64,000 bases of DNA, from NCBI GenBank assembly GCA_020536535.1, contig JAHLWZ010000867.1, forward strand, positions 4,004 through 68,003, in the 5' to 3' direction. A program made the translations under genes and the position numbers. The notes under the pieces are model-generated. The model searched no databases. It was not told the origin of the DNA and saw only the letters and a list, made by a program, of their open reading frames with translations. Positions 14,580 through 28,384 of this stretch are shown here, one piece after another. Numbering within the stretch: position 1 is the stretch's first letter; each line of letters opens with the position of its first letter. The stretch comes from Pelomyxa schiedti. Taxonomy: Eukaryota > Protista > Evosea.

Positions 14580-17500
14580 ATGACCATGGACCGGGGACTG
14601 TCGTTGTCGTTTTTGGCGTTGACGGTGACGCTTGCGGCAGTCGTGTATGCAGACGTGCCGGTGACGTCGAGCAAGGACGTTGTTTTGCACCTCACTTCTT
14701 CTTGGAAAGCCACTCCCCTGTTGTTGGAAATGGGGTACGTTTTTTTTCTTTTTTTTTTCTTTTTTTTTCGTGTGTTCCGTTTCCCCATAATAATGTTATT
14801 TGTGTTTGTTTGTAGAGAGGCAATGGCAAGACAAGGCGCATTTTGGAAATTTGCGGAGGCACTGATGGATGTCAAACAAGCCGTCGGTGAGGAGGCAAAC
14901 AACCAGTACATCCGGGCAATCCAGGTGGCAAAAGAAGTGCTGAACGATGACTGTAAATTGAGCATGCTGAAGCAGGCAATGGCCATGCGTAAGTTTAGTC
15001 CAAGTATTGAGGCCTACAGGTACACACCTATATCTTTTTTGAACCTTGTCACATACCACGTTGTAGGCATGTGGAGCAGGCTTCGAAACAGGCAGTCCTG
15101 TCAAAAAACAACACCGTGTGGTTGGAAGATTCATGCTGGGTTTTATTAGAAAACACTGCTGTTTTCCATATTGAAGAACTTGGCACACTTTTATCCACTG
15201 AGTAGGTCTTTCTATTTTTTGCCATCCACTTGCTTCCAGTTAACACATTAAAGGCGTCCTAACGGCAGACCACTTTTGCATGAGCAGCTTAGTTCATTTG
15301 GGCATTTGTATGGGGAACCCTCTACCTCCACACCCACTGCCATTCTGTATTGTAATATTGGAACCCAGCAATTCATTGACTTCCACAGTACCCTTCCCAC
15401 TCCTCCCAAGTTTTCACCCAACTAAAACATAGATGTTTTGAAAACTGCCTCGCAAAATGGCCAAATAACTTACCTTCTTCGACACCTTGTTACTGCTGGA
15501 AATGGTGTTGTGGGTGGGACAGACACTCCAATTAATATCCCTGGTTATGGGGTTGAGTTTGCATTGAAAAGTGTTGAATATAAAACTATCAATGTCGAGG
15601 AATCAGAAAAGCAAATTCAAACTGACCAAGAAGGTCTTTTCCTTCACCATTTTTCTTGAGGTATACTGACACAGAGTGCAGAAACTCTAAAAGACCAAGA
15701 AAATGCAAAAGAAAGCTCAGAAAGCCCTTTGGGATATGAGCCTCTTTTACCCAATAATGACTTTGACAAAATGTCAAGCAGTGATCTTGGAGGTTTAAGA
15801 GGTTTATTTTCATTCATTATTTAATTGACCTCACCAGCCCTGGGGTTGGCGGCTGTTTCCTTCATATCCTCTTCTGAGAATCCTCTTGCTGCAATGCAAT
15901 ACCTCTCAAACAACTTTCCCCTTGTTGCAATTTCTTTGGCAAGGTCCACTAGGAAGATTTTTCTTTCAAAAACTAAAACCACTGACAGGTCTAAGCGGAA
16001 TGCATCTGCACTGAAGACTCTTTTTGCCAACCAACGTCATGTAAGTGCTGGTGTAAATTCCCTTTCTATCAATGGTCTTGGTGTAGACCCGTCCCACATT
16101 GACCTTTTCAGGTTTTTTCTTTCAATGAGTTGATTTCAATTCACTTGTTTTTTTATAAGTTTAATGGAAATGGTGGATGAAGAACTGCAACACGTTACAG
16201 AGATAACATCCATTGGGATTCCTTCTTCTCTAGCTCTGGACTTGATGCAGCTTGGAGGTCCCAGTGACCACAACCAACCCAAAATCGTATTTGACATCAA
16301 TAGCGACTCAATAACATACATCAATGACCTATCACGTGATATGATGTACTCCCGCTTTGCCAGATCTGTTGGAGCGGTAAGCCCTCATCTGGTCTTTTTT
16401 GGTTTCTAATGGAGGAAAAATTTTTGAATCAAGCTACTTCGACCCAACTATCCCGGACAATTTTACTTCATTGCCAAGAATCTTTGGACTGGTGTATTGG
16501 TCATAAACCCAGGAAATCCAGACTCTCTCTTTATTTCCAACGTTCTTTATGGATTCTTGAGCCAGGTCCGAAGTTCTGTTAATTGTGAAGCATTAATACT
16601 ATCCAGATGCTGCCTCTTCGTTTGGGTATAGTTATGGCAGGTCTTAACATGAATTCAGATGTGGGAGGAAAATGCAGTGGAGTGGAATGCACTTTGAATA
16701 TTCCAAATGAACCTTCACCTGGTGTCTTGGTTGCACGAGCATTCCATCACCTTTGTGACAACACAGCAGGTTTCCTTGGTCTCTACTTTTTGTCTGAGGC
16801 ATGTGTTGCCCGAAATTGTCTTTAATTGTCTCAAGTTCCCTCAGGTTTACCAACAATTCGAAAGGTCAGGAAAACAGCTCCTTACAAACGATCATGTAGA
16901 AGCTGCCTGGAGGTATTCTCATTGTGAAAACCTCGTTGCTGTCCCTAACTTTTCTTTAAGCACACTTGCTGCTCGTCAAACTATTGGCTCGTTCCATGAT
17001 GCGATAAATTCCCTGGAGTATGATCCAAAACTTGCTTCACAAGAGCAGTTTGCCAACGAGAAAGGACTCACCAAATTCCCACTGCTATTTATCAATGGAC
17101 AACAGTGTACCACAGATGATGTACTCTCGATTATCACTCGCATTCAAACTGAATCTGGTTGATAGAGAATTGGATGGGAATTGACACAAATTATCCACGA
17201 TGTGGATGAGCTTCAAGCATTTGTTCAATTGGGTCTTATTGATGACAATACCGATATATACAAGTTCCTATTAAGTACATCGTCCAACCAGTTGGTTTTT
17301 AGTGAAAATAACAAATTTAGGCCAACCTGGAACTCTCTCCAAGTACAGCAAGCATGTTTTTGGAACAAAGCCGAATTATGTAGCCTTGACCGGCAAAATT
17401 GTGTCAGGGGAAGGACTATCTGAGCAGCACTCAGACCTTGTAGAGGCCAAAGTCAACACTCTCTGGAATCAGATTCATTTCTTCCATGCCCCCAAAAGTA

Positions 17501-20390
17501 GGTTAAATAGCTTTTAACCTCCATGATCTTACCAAAGCAGCTGAATATGTTGAAAAGACGCATACACATCTCATTTGTGCAGACTTTGGATCGATGAAAG
17601 GGAAGGAGGTGGCAAGTGCAGCTCTGAAGAATATTGTACATAACTCTACGTTGATGCCCAATTCCAATGTATTTAAAATGGGAACAGGATATCAATACCA
17701 GAGTTGCATTTCTTGACACAGGGAAAACGGTTCCCAATACTTGGCACAGGTTGCATTTGATGGATAGATCGAATTCTCAGGATGCATTAGACATTGTCTT
17801 GGGGTCTGACCAGGAAATGTCCCTAGCACCTGAGGTAGTGGCTCTTCATTCTTTGGGAAGAATGTTTTGTGAAGAAGTCGTTGGCACCACCAACACCACC
17901 TACGCTGTCGTGGCAAATGGCAAGGTTTTAATCCCACTGCTTTTCTTGGTTGTCATTTAGGGCCAACATTGCAGGTCATTGCTTTTCCCAGTGAAGAACC
18001 ACTACAGCCATTTGACTTTAATTTACTTTCTACTATGGACCACATGTGGGCCTCATCAGTATCGAAGGTTCTTACAGACGCCAATTTACAATATCCCGTG
18101 GATCCGGATATCCTCACTGCGTATGTAGCTGAAATCCTGTAAAGATCTGACTTTCTTCATAGAGATTTCCACAGCACTGTTCTGATGAAAGTTCTGTCTG
18201 TCTTAAGTCTTGATAAGAACCGGAAAATCAATCGAGTAAACTGGAATTTAACACCGTCTGTGAACAGACTATACCTTGTACTAGCTAACGTTCCTCAGGT
18301 CATTCACCGTTGTGCCCAAAACCGAGGTCTATAGCAGGATTTACGCAGTAATTGACCCTCTCAGTAAAACTGGCCAAAGAATGGGTGCCTTGATAAACAG
18401 TCTGTGCTCTTTACTTCCTGTGAGAGCTGACATATCCTTGAATCCACCCACGCACTTCGAGTCATTGCCCTTGAAATCTTTCTACCATTATGTCTTTGAC
18501 CCTGAAATTCAGTTTGATGAGAGTGGCAAGTAAGGGATAAAAGGTACTAAATTTTTTTTTTACGTAGCAAAAAGATTACTTCCTATCAATGTGGCACATA
18601 TCTCGTCACTTCCTTCCGCCCGGCTTCTCACTCTCGGTCTTGACATACCGCATTCATGGATAACAATGCCAGTTGAAGCCAAACATGATTTAGATAACAT
18701 CATGCTGTCAGATCTTGGGGCCTCTGAGACACGACTGTATGCAAAGTTTAATTTGGAACATATACTTGTAGAAGGTTACTTCGCTTCACAATCCATGTTT
18801 CTCGTTGCCCACCCAATTGAAAAACCTAGGAAATTGCTTTGAGGTAGTGAACGAGGTTCCTCCTCGAGGTCTGGAATTGGAATTACGTGGTTTTAGCAGT
18901 GACACTGTCTCCGCGGACACACTTGTTATGAGCAATTTTGGTTACTTCCAACTCAAAGCAAGCCCTGCTCCTTGGAGACTCTCGATCAGGGAAGGAAGGT
19001 AACCGTTTACCTCGTCCAGGAACTCAACTAAAGAGAAGAGCCAGATCAAGTAGAATTTTTGAAATGGATGACGCCACACTTGAGAAGGTTGTGGTTCTAG
19101 ATTCCTTTATTGGGAAAACTCTCTCTCTCCCAGTATGTTCGCTCTGGGGTATTTTATTGTTAATGGAGTTCAGGTCAAGAAGAGACCTGGGGAAGAAACA
19201 ACTGAGTTGCTAGGCGATGACGAAACGCAGGAACCAGAAGGTTCTGGTTTTTGGGATAAAATCTCCAGGTAACTAGAGCCCCTTCGACGTTTATAACTAC
19301 TGTCTAGTGTGTGGTCCTCAAAGTCTGAAGTACCAACACAGCAGTTGAGCAATGAAGACAACCGCGTTCACATTTTCTCACTAGCCAGTGGTCACCTATA
19401 TGAACGGTTTCTGAAAATTATGATGCTGAGTGTAGTGCAGCATACAAACAGTACAGTGAAATTCTGGTTCATCAAAAACTTTTTGTCCCCTGGATTTAAA
19501 GATTCCATCCCATCACTTGCTAAACATTATGGATTTGAGTATGAGCTTGTAACTTACAAATGGCCTGCTTGGTTGTTCCCACAAACTGAAAAAATGCGCT
19601 TAATTTGGGGATACAAAGTTCTGTTCTTGGATGTGCTCTTCCCAATTAACCTGAAGAAAGTTATTTTCATGGATTCTGATCAAGTAATCCTTGTTAAACA
19701 AATATGTATTCTCATCAGAATTAGGTTGCCAGAGCGGACATGAAGGAGCTGATGGAGCTTGATTTGCATGGCGCACCCATAGGAATGACACCATTTTGTT
19801 ATGGTGAGAACAAAAGAGAGGAAACTGCCGGATTCAGGTTCTGGGATACTGGTTACTGGCATGAGCACCTCAATGGAAAGCCATACCACATTAGGTCAGC
19901 TTTCATATCGTAATTCGTTTTTTTGTTCTAACCTAGAAACCAGTGCGCTGTTTGTGGTAGATTTGGTGAAATTCAGGAAGATGGCAGCAGGAGACATGTT
20001 CCGTGCACATTATGACTCACTTGCCCGTGTATGCCTTATTTTCCTTTTTCTGGTTTTTCCCCTCCAACCCTTGGCAACAGGATCCCAACAGTTTAAGTAA
20101 TCTGGATCAAGACCTTCCCAACTACTTGCAGGATTATGTCCCACTTTATTCCCTCCCTCCCGAGTGGTTGTATTGTGAAACTTGGTGTGCCGATTCACTC
20201 AAACCGCACGCAAAGACTATTGACTTGGTATGGCTACTCGATCTCTCTGCGGTTTTTTTCCTTATGACTGTAATAACAGTGTAACAACCCAATGACCAAG
20301 ACACCAAAACTTGATGCCGCAGTCCACATCATTGAGGAGTGGAGGGACCTTGACAATGAAATCAAACAGACTGAGAAGGCACTACATTAG
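14580..20390 (+). CDS. UGGT: UDP-glucose:glycoprotein glucosyltransferase
   Basis: Signal peptide; [14 protein letters not shown]; HDLDNIML; [19 protein letters not shown]24 domain: [22 protein letters not shown]...[11 protein letters not shown]...[14 protein letters not shown]...[14 protein letters not shown]...WLYCETWC. More than 20 short introns. Confidence 0.96.
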
Positions 20391-20552: not shown

Positions 20553-23500
20553 ATGTCTGCGGAACAAGCCTGGCCTCATTGTGTTGTGGTCAGTGGACAC
20601 TGGCACGTCGGCAAAGTTTGTCGCTGTTCCTTGTTGGTGCTTTTTGCGTGGAAAGACAAACGAAATACCGCAGAGAACTCTTGTCGATGAGCTGGAAAAA
20701 CGGTTCGCGACACCGGGACCTACGGGTCGAGTGTGTCGACTAAAAAGTTCAGCTGGTGAGTTGTTAACTATGATGTTATTTGTTGCTGTGAAAATTGATC
20801 TAACAGTTGTGTAAAGGCAAAGTCCATACTCTCCAGTTCACAAGTACCTGGAAGTAAACAACAAACTACTTGCTTATAATAATGAAGATGTTGGACATTT
20901 CGTCAACTCTGAGGAAATTTGTACACGGTACTACCCATTCCAGAGTGCAAGTGCCTTTTTGTTGTGTATTTCTGTGCATATTCCATATGCGATCGAGACG
21001 CTCACTGAGTTGGTTTGTTCTTCTTAATTTTTTTCTATCTTCCAAACACTACCATGCAGTACTTTTTGGAAGCACATGGTTGCGCACCAAAAGCACCCAT
21101 TATCCTTGTTGCACTTAGAGCTGATCTGCATCTAACTGGTCTAACTGGTGTAGAGACTACAGCCAAAACTAGATTAATTCCTCCTACAGAACTGCAACAG
21201 GTATCAAGTTTATTAGACAGCCAATGTGACTCTGCTTAGGTAGCCGACAAAATTGGCGCATTTGCTTTTGTCCAACTCAGCTGTAAGACTGGGCACAACC
21301 TAGGAACGCTTATGAAAATCCTAGCTGACGCTCTGGACTACTCTGAATCACCACACGCATCGCCAAGCTGTAAGTTCCCTTACTTTTCACAGACGAATTT
21401 ACTGTCCAAGCTGGAATTACCAAAGTCTTTGGGAAGCTGTGGTCATCTGATCCCAAACCAAATCCAGCAGAAACAAGAATTATAGGCTCACCCAGCACCA
21501 AACTTACAGGACCGCCATGCAGTGCCCTTGAAATATTTGGTGGTGGTACCAGTATAAGTCCCTCTTTCAGGTCAAACGACTCGGTTATTTCTGCTCACTC
21601 AAACCCAAAACAGTTATGGGCACACCTGTGCAGTACATAAAAATACCCTGTTCTTCTTTGGTGGCAGTGGACCTCAGAAACAATTACGTGCATCTCCTTG
21701 TATTCTAGACATGTCTACCGAGAGCCCGCGATGGGTACCATCTATCGCGGTTGAAAGTGCTCCCACCCTGCATACAACTGCAGCCGCTTCTGCACTACAA
21801 CCTTCCCCACCTGTAATGCCCAAGGAGTCCCTGACAGGAGTAGTTCCTCCTGGAAGCCAATTTGCTGCAGTGGGTTCTTTTCCAGCAATGTGCATTTTTG
21901 CACCCTTGGTCTTTTTATTTGGCGGAACATTTGAAGGCTCATCTACAAACCGCCTCCTTTCTTACGATATGGATGCTGGTGTCTGGAACTGTCTCTTTCC
22001 TCATTCCATCAAGTCCGCAACTGATAACTTTCCTGGTCTGTGTTATGGTGCCTCTCTCATTCGGTAACACTTTCATATCTACTTTCTCATCTGAAGTTTT
22101 CATAGGTTTCAGACTAAACTATTTTTATTTGGAGGGTGCACTCAGGACAATTGCAACTGCCAATTTTTTGGTTAGTTTCTACGGAAACGGTGAAACTGTG
22201 TCCAATAACGGTTGGCAGAATTTGATCTGGATTCTCATACCTGGAGATGCATTCCGGAGTCAACAGCTCCACCTCCCCGTTATCATCATAACGCTTTTGT
22301 CAGTGACATGTATTTGATAGCAGAGGGTTTTTGTTTTGGTAATTCCTTTTATGTAGAGGAAAGATGTACATCTTAGGAGGACTTGGTGCAGGCAATTCCA
22401 AGTTGAGTGACCTGTGGGAATACGATCTGAACTCTCGCTTTGCTGGAAAGCACACAGGTTGGAGGCATATTACAATTACAGGTTCAGTTCGGCCAACACC
22501 ACAGCGTGGTCATGTTGGTTGCATAATGCCATCGTCCAACTCATTCCTCTTATGTGGTTCCTCAAACAGCAATCCACACTGTGAGATATTCCAGTACGCA
22601 AATTCATTTCTCATTTTGATTAAAATTACTTTTAGATTGGATTTGGGTTCATTCAAGTGGAGTCCATTAAGTTTTGAGTCTTCCTCCGTGGCTCGAGAAG
22701 TTTGTGCCTTGCTTCCAACCCTCGATTAACTTGCACTAGTTCCATTCCGTCACCCCGTATGGCTCTTCGTTGCTCATTGCTGGTGGAATGTGGAGAAGAG
22801 CTGAAGGAGGATTTTTAGGTGATGCTTTCCAACTCGTATTCCCCAAATACATCTCGGTTGTGCCATTGTTGGCTTTGGATACCTGGATCTATTTATTGAG
22901 TTTTCTGGAGCTTCCAGATTTATGTCGCCTGAGCCAAGTAAATTCCTTTTCTCTCGATCTCCGCGGTGAAATTTTTTTAGACCTGCAAAGCCTTCTACGC
23001 ACTATGCGGAACAGACGAAGTATGGAAGAACTATGTCGATGAATCCATACGAAACGAGAAAAATCTTCGGCGGAAATGTATTTCAATCCAAGAGAATCGT
23101 ACACTTAAAATATTATCAGTTCTGGGCATTGGATATTCTTGGAGAAACCCAACTCCAGGAGTTTTGAAGTTCACTCCCCAGCACTGGGAGGTTAGTGAGA
23201 AATGAAAACTGTGCCTGTGTATTAATTACCTAGTAGAGACCTAGGCGAGTCATTTATGAGTGTTTCTTGGGTAATGCCTTTATCCTCATGGGAGATTTAT
23301 CAACAAGGTTTGTTATTCCTAAAATTCTTACCATCTTCAATTCTTGTTAGACTTGTTCATTCGGTAAGACCTGGTGATCTTGTGATGACTGAGGCCTACA
23401 AGCCTCACAGGATACAAGAAATCCACAAAAAGAAGGTTGACAAACACTTCAGGTTGTGTAGTGTGAGGAAGCAGCACAACTCCCAAATGGCTAAGCTTTA

Positions 23501-23974
23501 ACCCTAGGATGGTGTTCCTGAATGGCGTTGGACTAACAACAGGCCACCCAGTGTTTGTCAATGGCCAATGGGTTCGCAGTTGTGATATAGCACCCCCAAT
23601 ACTTCTCCGTGAACATCAGCTAAATCTGGAATCGAATGAAGATTTGATCTACAACTTTGTGCTTGAAGGTGGCCCATTGGTAAGCTTTCAGTGGTTCTAG
23701 ACTAGATTTAATCTGAGCAAAGGTGAGCGACCACAGTGTAATTCTGAATGGACTTTTGGTGTGCACCCTTGGTAAAGATTGTGGCGACACATTCCGGATC
23801 AGGCACCCACAGGCCGACTCCAAGTATGGTCCACTGCAAAAACGGCAACTTATTTTCTTTAAATTCTTAGGTACGGAACTGGATTTTGGGTCACCTACGT
23901 TCCTTGTGAGCTCCATACTTAGGCAAGTGTTCTCAACAACTAATTTATTGGGTGGCAAGTGTGGCGAGGTGTGA
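20553..23974 (+). CDS. Multidomain protein: degenerate Rho-like GTPase domain, Kelch repeats, F-box, C-terminal Hint (Vint-like) domain
   Basis: Rho-like: VVVSGHWHVGKRT...SAFLLCISV...CAPKAPIILVALRADL...KIGAFAFVQLSCKTG. Kelch: YGHTCAVHKNTLFFFGG, KMYILGGLGAGNSKLSDLWEYDL. F-box: LALDTWIYLLSFLELPDLCRLSQTCKAFY. Hint: CFLGNAFILMGD...VRPGDLV...LTTGHPVFVNGQW...IYNFVLE...HSVILNGLLVCTLG. Exact 3' end uncertain. Confidence 0.78.
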
Positions 23975-24118
23975 TGAATTTCTATGCGAGCTATCATATT
24001 CCCCGTTTCCCCTGCGCCACAGCAAGTAAAAAGAACACAAAAGTATCCTTTCGTTTTTTTTCTGAACAAATGTTGTGTTTTTGGAAGAGTTTTTGACAGT
24101 GACAACGATGAGAGCAAC

Positions 24119-27005
24119 TTAATGTCCAAGGGGGTTGAGTCTGGGGACTTTGGGAGAGGGTCCTGTTGGGACCGCAGTATCAAGTGCACAACAGCTGACG
24201 GTCGCGGTGGTTGTTGGGGACTGGGAGCATGGGTGGGGCAGTAGTGGTATGAGGAATCCATCTTTGTCTTTTACCGCTCTTTGATAATGAACTGCGGTTG
24301 TGGACTTCTGGGAAATGGTAGAAACAGCGGCACTGGTAGTCCCACAGCATTGTTGTAAAGGTGCAACGGTTCTGCGATGCCGCCCATAAGGAGCCCTGGT
24401 TGCTGGGATGTTATTGGTGACTCTGGTTGGAGCAGGGTTGTAAACACGGCTGCAGAGTGATTCATTTTTAGCTTCCGAGATGACCATCCTCAGGTATCTG
24501 CGTGCTTTTTCTCTGAAGATTTCGACACTTGCTGGATCAGGGTGCCTGGCAAGAACATCCTCGGCTCCACGATGCAGGAACTCAAGCAGCTTCGGAACCA
24601 TGGTTTCACAGGAGCATATCTCCAACAGCCATTCAAAAATGGATGGTAATCCCGTTGCTTCGTCAATGCTGAAGTACTTTCCAGACCGGCCGAGGTCGAC
24701 AAAGACAGCATCAGACACCATTTCAACTGTCAGAAAGTTGTCCGCATACTCGGCAACCGTATCGGCAAGATATTTGTTGGGCATCTCATCGCCAAGGTCA
24801 ATGCAGCTCAGAAGATAAAGCGTTACCACCCACACGTTTCGTGCTCTGAAAAGTGCCATCTCAAGCTCGAGGGCAGGGAATGACTGGGCTACTGGAGAGA
24901 GAATAACCTCAAGTGCAAGGATATGTTTGTTGAGCTTCCGATATCCGATTGCGAAGCGGCCTCCCCCACCCTTCTTGGGGTACGGTCGCAACGTTAGGAG
25001 GGCTTGAAAGAAGATGATGGGCCACTGAACCATTTTCCAGTGAAAGAGGTCGTTGTTGTGCAACCACAGCAGTGCCTCACAATTTACCCCCCTTTTGATC
25101 AACTCCCAAAGAACAGCATTCATCTTGAACCCAGGGTCGCCAGTTTGTGGGTTCCCCACTGCCTCGGCTCTCACAAAGGGAAGCAAAGCATCAGCCACCT
25201 TGAAACTTTTTGATGACACCAAGTAGTGGGAAATTGAGTCCTCCTCTATTGAGCCAAGCACCTCCCTCGGTACTCCAATGAAGTCCTCGGATAACTTGTG
25301 AAAGTGTCTCAGAGCTACTGGTGTCAGAGCGGAGACAAGCAGATCAGACAAAGATCCCTTTATTTCTGCAATAAACTCCGGCTGCGTGAGCATAAAATTC
25401 AAGACCGAGTCGTTGTTGAATGTGCACGCCGTTTTTAGGAGTCCAGAAACTGTTCCTGCGGGGAGCGGTGCGGTGTGCTTTCGCCAACGCACAAGTATTT
25501 CCTCGAAAATAGTCTCCGCTTCATTGGTGTTGTGTCTCGCAATGTTGTACAGGAGGTTGGGAATACTCTCTTGGATACCTTCCTCACCGCCACGTACCTC
25601 TGGGCTGAGAATATGTTTCAACGTGACCCACATTCCAGCAAAAGCAGCCGCCAACGCGATCGTTGGTTTCACGAACGGGGGCCATCTACGTGTCCAAAAT
25701 TCCACAGGAATTTGTGCCGAATCCCAGCGTGTGGGGTCAGCAGCAACCATGTCGAGGATCGCATTGCATGCGGTTCTGAAGGTCTTCTCAGTCGTACACG
25801 CTGATTTAAGCACGGAGGTGCTGAAGCTTATCAAGGGGTAGGTTGACGTCCTTGGTACTGCATTCAAAAGCAGTTGACAAACTTCTGGGTGCTCCCCCGT
25901 TGCGGCACTGCAGAAAGCACTTGTCTTGAGTGTATGGGTGACATCATCATAAAGGAGTTGGGCTCCTACTGGCAGGGCCAGTATGGTCTCTATCAACGGG
26001 GAAGCTCCTGTGAAACTTGCAATTTCAAGCAACTCTCCAACTTGTGGGATGTCATTGATCAGCGTGCATACAATAAGGGTGGAAACCAGCTGTGTCATTC
26101 GCACTCCAAGCTGTGATACTTCCTTTTGGGTTTTTGCCCTTAGCATCGACTGCCTCGCAACGGAAATTCCCATGCAAATGGCCACGCGGAGGTTCTTGTG
26201 ATTCCTATTCTGGAGGCCAAAGTCATCATGGCCACCCGCAGTCGTCAACACAGGCAGGACCGAGACCTCCCTCTGCCACGCATCAAGGAACTCATTCTGT
26301 CCGTGGGCGATGGCGTAAAGAAATGCACCTGTGGAAACTTGTCAGTGATACAACAAGCACTGAAGAATGCAAAGAAACCTGGTGTGGCGCTCGGAAAGCA
26401 GTGAAACCGGGATCTGTACATTGGCAACAAGCACTTGATCGCCACGTCTGGGGTCCCATGTGTGGCACACACGTTGATCATGTTGGAGATACTCCCCACT
26501 CTGCTATTGAGCCACTTGATCGCCTTGCCCAGGCCAAAAGGATAGAATACTTCCGCCATCTTCACAACAAACATGATCTGGTCACTTTTAAAGTGCATCA
26601 GGTGTGCAACTGCCCATGTTGTCCTCCATTGAAGAGATTGCCTTTTCCTCTTGCAGTCACAGAATGCCTCTGGAACGTCTGTGAGTTTCCGTTTTCTATC
26701 TTGCTTCCCGAAAAGTGTTCTGTATACAATTCGCCACATGGTGTCAATTTGAAAGAGAGTCTGACCAAAAGCCCGTTTGCTCTGCGATTTCTTCCTCTCA
26801 CAACCAGCGCTTCTGATTTGTGTTGTTATTGCGATGTCAAGTTGTTTGGAAAGTACACACCCATTATCAGCCTGAACTGTTGCCAACACGGCCTCCTTGG
26901 AATCACCAACAAGAGGTGAGACTGCTGTTCCAGTCGTGATCGACCTAGACTCCGTGCTTCTGTTTTTGTTTTGTAGTTAGTACCTCTGTGTTGTTGATGT
27001 ATGCA
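24119..27005 (-). CDS. Large alpha-helical hypothetical protein (possibly degenerate ankyrin-like repeats)
   Basis: ORFs 26245-26889 and 24119-26251 can be joined by a short GT-AG intron near 26211-26266. Probable short first exon MHTSTTQR. Weak ankyrin-like pieces (FCSAATGEHPEVCQLLL). Ends uncertain. Confidence 0.55.
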
Positions 27006-27582
27006 TGTTAATTGCTAGCATTTTACTTAAAAATAATGCAACTGAAACGCACAGAGTCCCCTGTGTCGGCATCTCACCGCCGACGTTGTTTTGGTTCATG
27101 CTTCGTGGTTCGTGGTTCGACACGAGTGTCCGGGAAAGCGTGTCTTTGCTGGAATGATGGAGAACGGCCACTAAATTTAGCCTCAATTGGATCTGCTCGG
27201 GGCACTCGGCCTCCTGGTCGTTAGGGGCCCAGTACACCTAGAACTACCCGACCACCAATACCGGACAGCAGACTGCACTCTACTAGAGAGTAGAGTTGCG
27301 GGCCTTCACATTTTCCTCCTCCCACAATTTAGTCTACGGACAGAATCGGGAAGTTTTTCTACTCCGAAGAGACACATAAATTTGTGGAGTGTGGGAGATT
27401 GGGCAGAATTGTGACCGGGTCAGGTGTCCGCATCTGATTTCGCATTGCAATTCCCCCCATTGCCCACACTCCCCACTCACCTACCCCTTAATACAATAAC
27501 CAAATCCAAAACAACAATTTTTTTGTGTTTTTTTTCCTACTGGCCAATGGTACGCAATGTAATTGTATTTACACGGTGGCAC

Positions 27583-28384
27583 TCAACATATACAACAATC
27601 ATCCCCTGTTTTGCGTGTGGTATTGCTCTTGGTTGGTTTTGTTGGCTTTGTTGGTTTTCCTGCTTTTGTTGTGGTTGTTGTAGTGCTCTTTGAGGGTGTT
27701 GGCTTTTTTTTTGTTGTGTTGGGTGCTGCCTTGCTTGCTCCCTTTTTGGGTGCACACGAGTGATCATCTGGAAACCGGTGCCTGCAGAAAGTACAGTAAG
27801 TGGGCAGAAATTCCGTTATGAAATACTTCAGGCAAAAGTTCAAGTTGCATTTCGGACAGAGGCAAGAAATGTTCCCGATAGATGTGTTGCACCCAGTAGC
27901 AGCACATTTATGCTGTGCTGGGCGATTTTTACAAGCACCCTGGTCCATGTGCTCCCAAACCTATTACGAACAAGAAAAAGGAAATGAAAGAGGAAAAGGC
28001 CAATTCTTCGTGAATGTTAGGAAGCTAAACGTGTGTGGGAGAGTAAGAAGATCGAAACGAGAAGGAATTCCATACGACTTTATTATGGTCACTATCGGCA
28101 GTAGTCGGCAAAGTGGCCCCACAAGCTGGACAAAAAATAGCAATTTTATTAACCGAGGAAGCAAATTGGCAGTGATGTGCATCACTTGATCTGTTATATT
28201 CTTAACAACGCACAGCACTAACTAAACTGATAAAAACTTCTCGTATAACACGCGAGGGGAAAAAAAAAAACCTGTGGTCGGAACAAAATTGATGGTGGCA
28301 CAGTTCACAAGTGAAAGGAAGATAATCCTGTCTCATGCACGTCTCAACTGCACATCGCGCCCCGATACCACAAAATTCAACCAT
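27583..28384 (-). CDS. AN1-type zinc finger protein (ZFAND2/AIRAP-like) with a C-terminal Cys motif
   Basis: Two AN1 fingers: IGARCAVETCMRQDYLPFTCELCHHQFCSDHR and CAATGC...CPKCNLNFCLKHRFPDDHSC. Ends DDCCIC* (CaaX-like). Confidence 0.85.

Follow-up and report, generated by a model that had tools for sequence, protein, structure and literature searches.

Pelomyxa schiedti is an anaerobic, symbiont-rich phagotrophic amoeba. The window (the whole stretch of 64,000 nucleotides of its DNA that was analysed) is intron-rich and eukaryotic, and carries a gene, Pelo_13047, whose product ends in a Vint-type HINT domain (Table 1). Its coding region and ATG start codon were placed by reading all three frames together with single-cell RNA contigs, and the deposited protein P0017 is the exact translation of the resulting model. 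Searches were run with single exons and then, for full-length work, with P0017. Two DNA runs, which may be the assembly's own source, showed zero sequence differences. Upstream lies a gene for UDP-glucose:glycoprotein glucosyltransferase (~16700-20390, + strand; Glyco_transf_24, E 4e-53; RNA-spliced) that ends ~160 bp before the start codon of Pelo_13047; downstream, a convergent gene (24119-26251, - strand) has a 710-aa open frame, RNA coverage of its 3' end and no Pfam match. Further on (27537-27948, - strand), frames with AN1-type-zinc-finger-like Cys/His patterns and a Lys/Thr-rich stretch were noted by eye. The spliceosomal introns and the eukaryotic neighbour genes rule out a bacterial or viral contaminant.

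Table 1. Features of the Pelo_13047 gene, in window positions
Feature	Residues	Position	Strand	Basis
Whole coding region, 20 exons	832 aa	20553..23922	+	stop TAG 23920-23922
Rho-type domain, putative pseudo-GTPase	~8-178	20574..21335	+	Pfam Ras, family profile, motifs; four introns RNA-spliced
Kelch beta-propeller, about six blades	~241-580	21563..22844	+	Pfam, model strands, Foldseek
F-box, split by intron 22938-22980	586-630	22860..23037	+	Pfam, alignment
Linker of 45 residues ending in Glu675, the predicted scissile (-1) residue		23038..23260	+	RNA-spliced
Vint-type HINT core	676-799	23261..23773	+	Pfam Vint, AlphaFold2, 8R2C match
C-terminal tail, three short helices	800-832	23774..23922	+	last intron RNA-spliced
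3' untranslated region, to RNA contig end		23923..24034	+	RNA contig

The first-pass annotation of this DNA had read the F-box as spliced in frame into a Hint segment. This is borne out by a 755-nt single-cell RNA contig spanning ~23004-24034 (the first coordinate is derived from the positions of the record and the bin depth), which splices six GT..AG introns (23078-23119, 23191-23236, 23308-23350, 23453-23507, 23680-23722 and 23824-23870) and holds a single open frame that takes in the last F-box helix, the linker and the entire Hint domain, from Cys676 on, down to the stop codon. A Hint domain encoded by a separate downstream gene is thereby ruled out. Two details of the annotation had to be corrected: its text gave the linker without the intron at 23078-23119, which the RNA splices, and it let the gene end at 23974, where the unspliced ORF runs out. 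With intron 23824-23870 removed, as in the RNA, the stop codon lies at 23920-23922, and the later end is rejected as a product of reading through this intron. Further RNA contigs splice four introns of the Rho part and one of the Kelch part. The transcript is confirmed in part: RNA joins the F-box end to the Vint and supports 11 of the 19 introns, while the other eight (introns 1, 6-9 and 11-13), all GT..AG, come from the deposited model. Exon 22740-22937 runs from the last Kelch blade into the F-box and takes in its first two thirds, which leaves the 43-nt intron within the F-box as the one joint on the way from Kelch to Vint that lacks confirmation. In the paralogue C980, a single RNA-derived contig (with one intron retained) carries Kelch, F-box and Vint, and there the intron matching this 43-nt intron is spliced out.

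The domain order claimed earlier (pseudo-Rho, Kelch, F-box, Vint) was upheld by Pfam on P0017 together with a family profile and the GTPase motif set. The Pfam Ras match of P0017 falls below its cut-off (E 1.3e-3, 18.8 bits, cut-off 21.6); a profile of seven paralogues matched RhoA structures at E 2e-22, which identifies the N-terminal domain as Rho-type. In its G1 motif GxxxxGK is followed by Arg22 instead of Ser/Thr, the G3 Asp is replaced by Thr57 (a loss confirmed by RNA) and the G4 Lys by Arg119; judged by these motifs, the domain is a pseudo-GTPase in which the Mg-binding residues are lost. The Rho domain of the paralogue P0005 is more intact. The intron 20616-20673, taken from the deposited model, lies directly after the P-loop Gly-Lys and recurs in the paralogues inspected; an alternative acceptor AG at 20655 would yield Gly-Lys-Thr plus six residues.

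The Kelch propeller is well supported by Pfam (KLHDC2-type, E 1.5e-37; Kelch_1, 61.5 bits against a cut-off of 20.1), and its nearest solved relative is LZTR1 (E 9e-20), followed by KLHDC3/10/2 and FBXO42. LZTR1 binds RAS GTPases. Both F-box families in Pfam were matched over their cut-offs (PF12937, F-box-like, E 3.9e-8, 33.4 bits, cut-off 24.3; PF00646, F-box, E 5.6e-6, 26.5 bits), and in the alignment the F-box is canonical except for a Leu-Ala, with Ala590, where paralogues such as Pelo_3025 have Leu-Pro. The P. schiedti genome has genes for Skp1 and cullin, and we infer from the sequence of this F-box that it may bind Skp1. The linker behind it carries a family motif, W-[KR]-N-P, that is common to both F-box-Vint clades described below. 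No signal peptide, N-terminal membrane helix or N-terminal hydrophobic stretch was found in P0017, in agreement with the cytosolic placement proposed earlier. Fusions of a small-GTPase domain to a cullin-adaptor motif are known from RhoBTB and Rab40, and Pelo_13047 is likewise such a fusion. Unlike in Kelch F-box proteins such as FBXO42, the F-box here follows the Kelch domain rather than preceding it, and none of FBXO42, LZTR1, RhoBTB and Rab40 has the Hint-type autoprocessing domain in which Pelo_13047 ends.

That this last domain is of the Hint (Vint-like) type, as the annotation had proposed, was confirmed by the two approaches it recommended, profile search and structure prediction. Pfam Vint (PF14623) matched residues 676-804 of P0017 well over the curated cut-off (E 5.8e-14, 52.7 bits against 27), and the AlphaFold2 model of the domain (pLDDT 86) has a HINT fold with a Vint C-terminal region. 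Its best structural match is the Tetrahymena thermophila Vint 8R2C (Z 15.8, rmsd 2.6 A, 139 aligned), the alignment covering model residues 24-181 with the C-terminal tail included; BIL domains, inteins and Hedgehog follow at Z 10-12 (10.6 for Hedgehog 1AT0). With Foldseek, the best match had E 1e-7 and the second best, BIL2 (6TMM, 6Y75), E 2e-6. The model of the full-length protein is of low confidence (pLDDT 53), too poor for inter-domain contacts.

The catalytic blocks A and B are intact and the terminal His-Asn is absent, as had been read from the letters alone. Block A begins with Cys676 (Cys1; codon 23261-23263), directly preceded by Glu675, and block B has the TxxH motif with Thr735 (23536) and His738 (23545); in block F (~23647-23664) Asn774 replaces the usual Asp, and a block G-like stretch lies at 23729-23773. 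Further residues of the HINT core are His786, Cys796 and Thr797 (23765). By structural alignment, Cys796-Thr797-Leu798 occupy the positions of the terminal His-Asn, the terminal Asn of inteins falling on model residue 148, i.e. Thr797. As the alignment with Hedgehog 1AT0 stops one residue later, Thr797 is placed on Hedgehog Cys143, the residue that forms the branched thioester intermediate during autoprocessing (PMC12054796). The Pelomyxa Vints inspected have Thr at this position, and P0022 has Cys; the Tetrahymena Vint region has Cys there as well, as we infer in part. By analogy, Thr797 could accept a branched ester.

The C-terminal tail matches the post-HINT (adduct-recognition-like) region of 8R2C. 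It has no strong basic or hydrophobic signature, and its conserved residues are Cys802, Pro811 and Tyr817-Gly-x-Gly-x-Trp822. With Cys796-Thr797-Leu798 at the terminal positions and a C-terminal domain not followed by a C-extein, an intein identity is ruled out. A Hog identity is likewise rejected: Hog motifs are absent from the Vint of P0017, PF01079 (Hint) gives no match on this protein, the -1 residue is Glu, the Cys143 position is taken by Thr797, and there is no N-terminal hydrophobic stretch. Pelo_13047 and Hedgehog/Hog do share the HINT fold, Cys1, TxxH, a C-terminal extension that is not an extein and, at the Cys143 position, a residue able to act as a nucleophile; the differences are that Pelo_13047 lacks motifs J/K/L and the sterol-recognition region, has Glu where Hedgehog has a fixed Gly at -1, and carries cytosolic E3-adaptor domains upstream. 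The vWA-Vwaint-Vint proteins, some of which have an upstream E3 module, a U-box (Burglin 2008, PMC2362128), are alike in the PF14623 Vint and its C-terminal place, in blocks A and B and in the absence of both a signal peptide and the terminal His-Asn. Unlike them, Pelo_13047 has an F-box 45 residues before Cys1, a shorter post-HINT tail and no VWA or Vwaint (no Pfam match to either in P0017, whereas the canonical locus L006 has both).

Pelo_13047 had been presented as a singular system; in fact it belongs to a group of about 18 Rho-Kelch-F-box-Vint paralogues, and a unique one-off gene is ruled out by the 39 loci of the same genome in which a clear F-box lies directly upstream of a Vint. At least 81 distinct Vint loci were counted in the genome (about 40 of them judged from match coordinates only). 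Among the strongest, eight belong to the canonical single-exon type; one of these, L006, is confirmed by Pfam as vWA-Vwaint-Vint. Kelch, F-box and Vint follow each other in this order at sixteen loci, Pelo_13047 included, nearly all with a Rho piece upstream; C405 and C737 are two more Kelch-F-box-Vint loci by their match coordinates, and C1014 has the F-box without Kelch. In the unrooted Vint tree, the Pelo_13047 clade is separate from that of the vWA-Vints (99/98 support), and a second clade (97/86) also sits behind F-boxes, mostly with a Ras-like domain first where the upstream part is visible. For ten F-box matches that at first had no Vint, a search with clade-B exons located one on the same strand, 0.1-0.9 kb downstream. 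At least four further loci combine a WWE-like region, a weak split F-box and a Vint; the split F-box of WWE-type members, including one from Mastigella, matches Pfam weakly (E 0.003-0.025), and in profile comparison it is not significant. The N-terminal module before the F-box-Vint thus varies (Rho-Kelch, Ras or WWE).

Every full-length paralogue in the alignment keeps Cys1 and TxxH, and the loci surveyed show no variation in TxxH or the block-G Thr, whereas the -1 residue varies among Glu, Gly, Ser, Ala and Pro. In comparison with its closest paralogues, the gene has changed least in Vint (79-83% identity, dN/dS about 0.07-0.20) and most in Rho (43-51%, dN/dS 0.29-0.55); dN/dS is below 1 in every domain, the values being rough because dS is near saturation. 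As judged from these comparisons, Cys676, Thr735, His738 and Thr797 are shown to be conserved under purifying selection. The spliceosomal introns in the Vint exons lie at positions common to paralogues.

Vint domains are widespread in eukaryotes. In the same family, Pelomyxidae, a transcript of Mastigella eilhardi encodes WWE, a weak F-box-like region and Vint. Three queries were run against proteins; within the reach set by word seeding and length windows, they found no F-box-Vint outside Pelomyxa and Mastigella, so that of the protist search proposed earlier only the weak Mastigella form was recovered. The viral contigs searched gave no match, and F-box plus Vint had no usable match in ESM Atlas (clusters of 50 or more). 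The metagenome contigs searched yielded only three distant Hint pieces; in these (L061-L063) a P-loop GTPase-like frame with no Pfam match lies just upstream of the Hint-like piece with TxxH, in a different frame, a layout that recalls the GTPase-Hint protein GmGIN1. ESM Atlas and BFVD also contain many Vint/Hint look-alike clusters from giant viruses (Nucleocytoviricota) and phages, all scoring <0.9 and to be taken as a lead only.

The architecture appears to be undescribed, as had been claimed: no description of F-box-Vint was found in the searchable literature, and the P. schiedti genome paper (PMC8887013) mentions neither Vint nor F-box. In fact, the only sources on Vint domains found in searchable literature and structures were PMC2362128 and 8R2C. 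What appears new is the F-box-Vint pairing, and the claim of a new system has to be narrowed by precedents. An E3 module is already combined with Vint in U-box-vWA-Vint proteins, the fungal GmGIN1 (a GTPase-like domain plus Hog) is, like Pelo_13047, a non-secreted GTPase-Hint fusion (PMC2362128), and BIL2, of the Tetrahymena BUBL/BIL2 proteins, conjugates its upstream domain to targets, a Ras GTPase among them, which is a precedent for a Hint-family domain joining a protein to a target lysine (PMC8616854). Both BIL2 and Pelo_13047 tie an intein-like domain to the ubiquitin system; BIL2 has a terminal Asn and flanking ubiquitin-like domains, neither of which occurs in Pelo_13047, where the upstream part is a predicted ligase adaptor.

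Our preferred reading, held tentatively and by analogy, is that Pelo_13047 works in the cytosol as an SCF (Skp1-Cullin1) adaptor and contains an acyl-transfer domain for a single turnover, which would pass the N-terminal part of the protein to a nucleophile; self-cleavage as such, whether by acyl transfer or hydrolysis, we consider probable on the same analogy. Cys676, aided by TxxH, would attack the Glu675 carbonyl in an N-S shift at the Glu675-Cys676 bond, and the acyl group may then move to Thr797. Since the terminal Asn is missing, no C-cleavage or splicing would follow, and the ester would be resolved by an outside nucleophile, possibly held by the C-terminal tail. Cleavage would free a 17.7-kDa Vint, whereas the 74.0-kDa Rho-Kelch-F-box fragment would keep a protein side chain or a small molecule attached at Glu675. 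In the SCF geometry, whatever follows the F-box C-terminally faces E2-ubiquitin, and substrate-binding domains normally sit there; the adduct would therefore sit where the substrate sits, or tether the ligase. The variable N-terminal modules may serve as sensors or recruiters, with F-box-linker-Vint as the constant output unit.

Among the features weighing against this reading are the tail, shorter than in vWA-Vints, the varying -1 residue, Asn774 and the Leu-Ala of the F-box. It is possible, if on the unlikely side, that the Vint only cuts itself, by hydrolysis or thiolysis and under the control of a ligand or of redox state, as a removable cap that, while uncut, would block or destabilise the SCF adaptor; the free-acid C-terminus (Tyr-Glu) could then be a degron or be bound by a KLHDC-like propeller. 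The 8R2C paper (Iwai et al., FEBS Lett 2024) reportedly proposed ligand-regulated cleavage. The conserved residues, Cys1 and TxxH among them, and the selection acting on them would fit plain hydrolysis equally well, the truncated tail points the same way, and the Kelch domain resembles the C-degron-binding KLHDC2/3/10. BIL domains, moreover, yield mainly cleaved products (PMC7664689). On the other hand, Thr or Cys is kept at the Hedgehog Cys143 position together with the conserved tail, neither being obviously needed for hydrolysis, and the new C-terminal residue varies across paralogues.

Within the acyl-transfer reading, a more specific version, also by analogy, is that F-box-linker-Vint is a covalent substrate-capture unit: a sensor would engage the target, Vint would ligate Glu675 to a target side chain, and the ligated target would be fixed at the SCF substrate position for ubiquitylation. 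We regard this version as doubtful. Somewhat more doubtful still is a Vint that stays uncut in vivo and acts as a ligand- or substrate-binding domain, possibly a metal or redox sensor via Cys676, His738, His786, Cys796 and Cys802. The usual place of substrate-binding domains behind the F-box, the missing Asp of block F and the Pro at -1 in some family members, a residue that is usually unfavourable there for the N-S shift, argue for it; against it, Cys1 at the exact start of the domain and TxxH, invariant in both clades and in the vWA-Vints, form the signature of an active Hint. Least probable is that Pelo_13047 is no working SCF adaptor at all, its F-box and Rho domains decaying or its Vint a self-removing passenger that the expanded F-box genes tolerate: the loss of the F-box Pro and of GTPase motifs, the very large lineage-specific expansion and the rearranged look of some loci (e.g. 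C737 with duplicated F-box pieces) would agree with this, but the frame is open across 20 exons, transcribed and spliced, all domains have dN/dS <1, the Vint exons share their intron positions, and there is no homing endonuclease.

In about half of some 80 Vint genes of one genome, the predicted scissile bond thus lies just behind an F-box, with changing candidate sensor domains before it, which would link Hint chemistry to cullin-RING ligases. Constructs of the F-box-Vint unit are small and soluble, their obvious mutants are C676A, H738A and T797A, and cleavage, adduct mass and Skp1 binding can be measured on them. If the acyl group does go to proteins or lipids, this would be a novel means of arming, anchoring or loading a ubiquitin ligase and possibly a new protein-ligation tool; substrate capture, if true, would mean a single-use, thioester-driven class of ubiquitin-ligase adaptor with dozens of genes, and the first cellular role for Vint domains.

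A few other loci of this genome deserve mention. C737 and C387 (L022, L023) carry tandem F-box-Vint copies, with duplicated Kelch/F-box pieces and two Vints in C737. At G000:C328:11932-12805 (+), a Kelch blade and F-box of the family type have no Vint match reported downstream, possibly marking a Vint-less member. A further Vint subfamily, comprising C693, C1803, C1289 and probably more (L020 2286-2603, L028 1843-2568, L030 727-1395), has a conserved N-terminal domain with no Pfam match and an HPRAG-type motif in place of a clear F-box.
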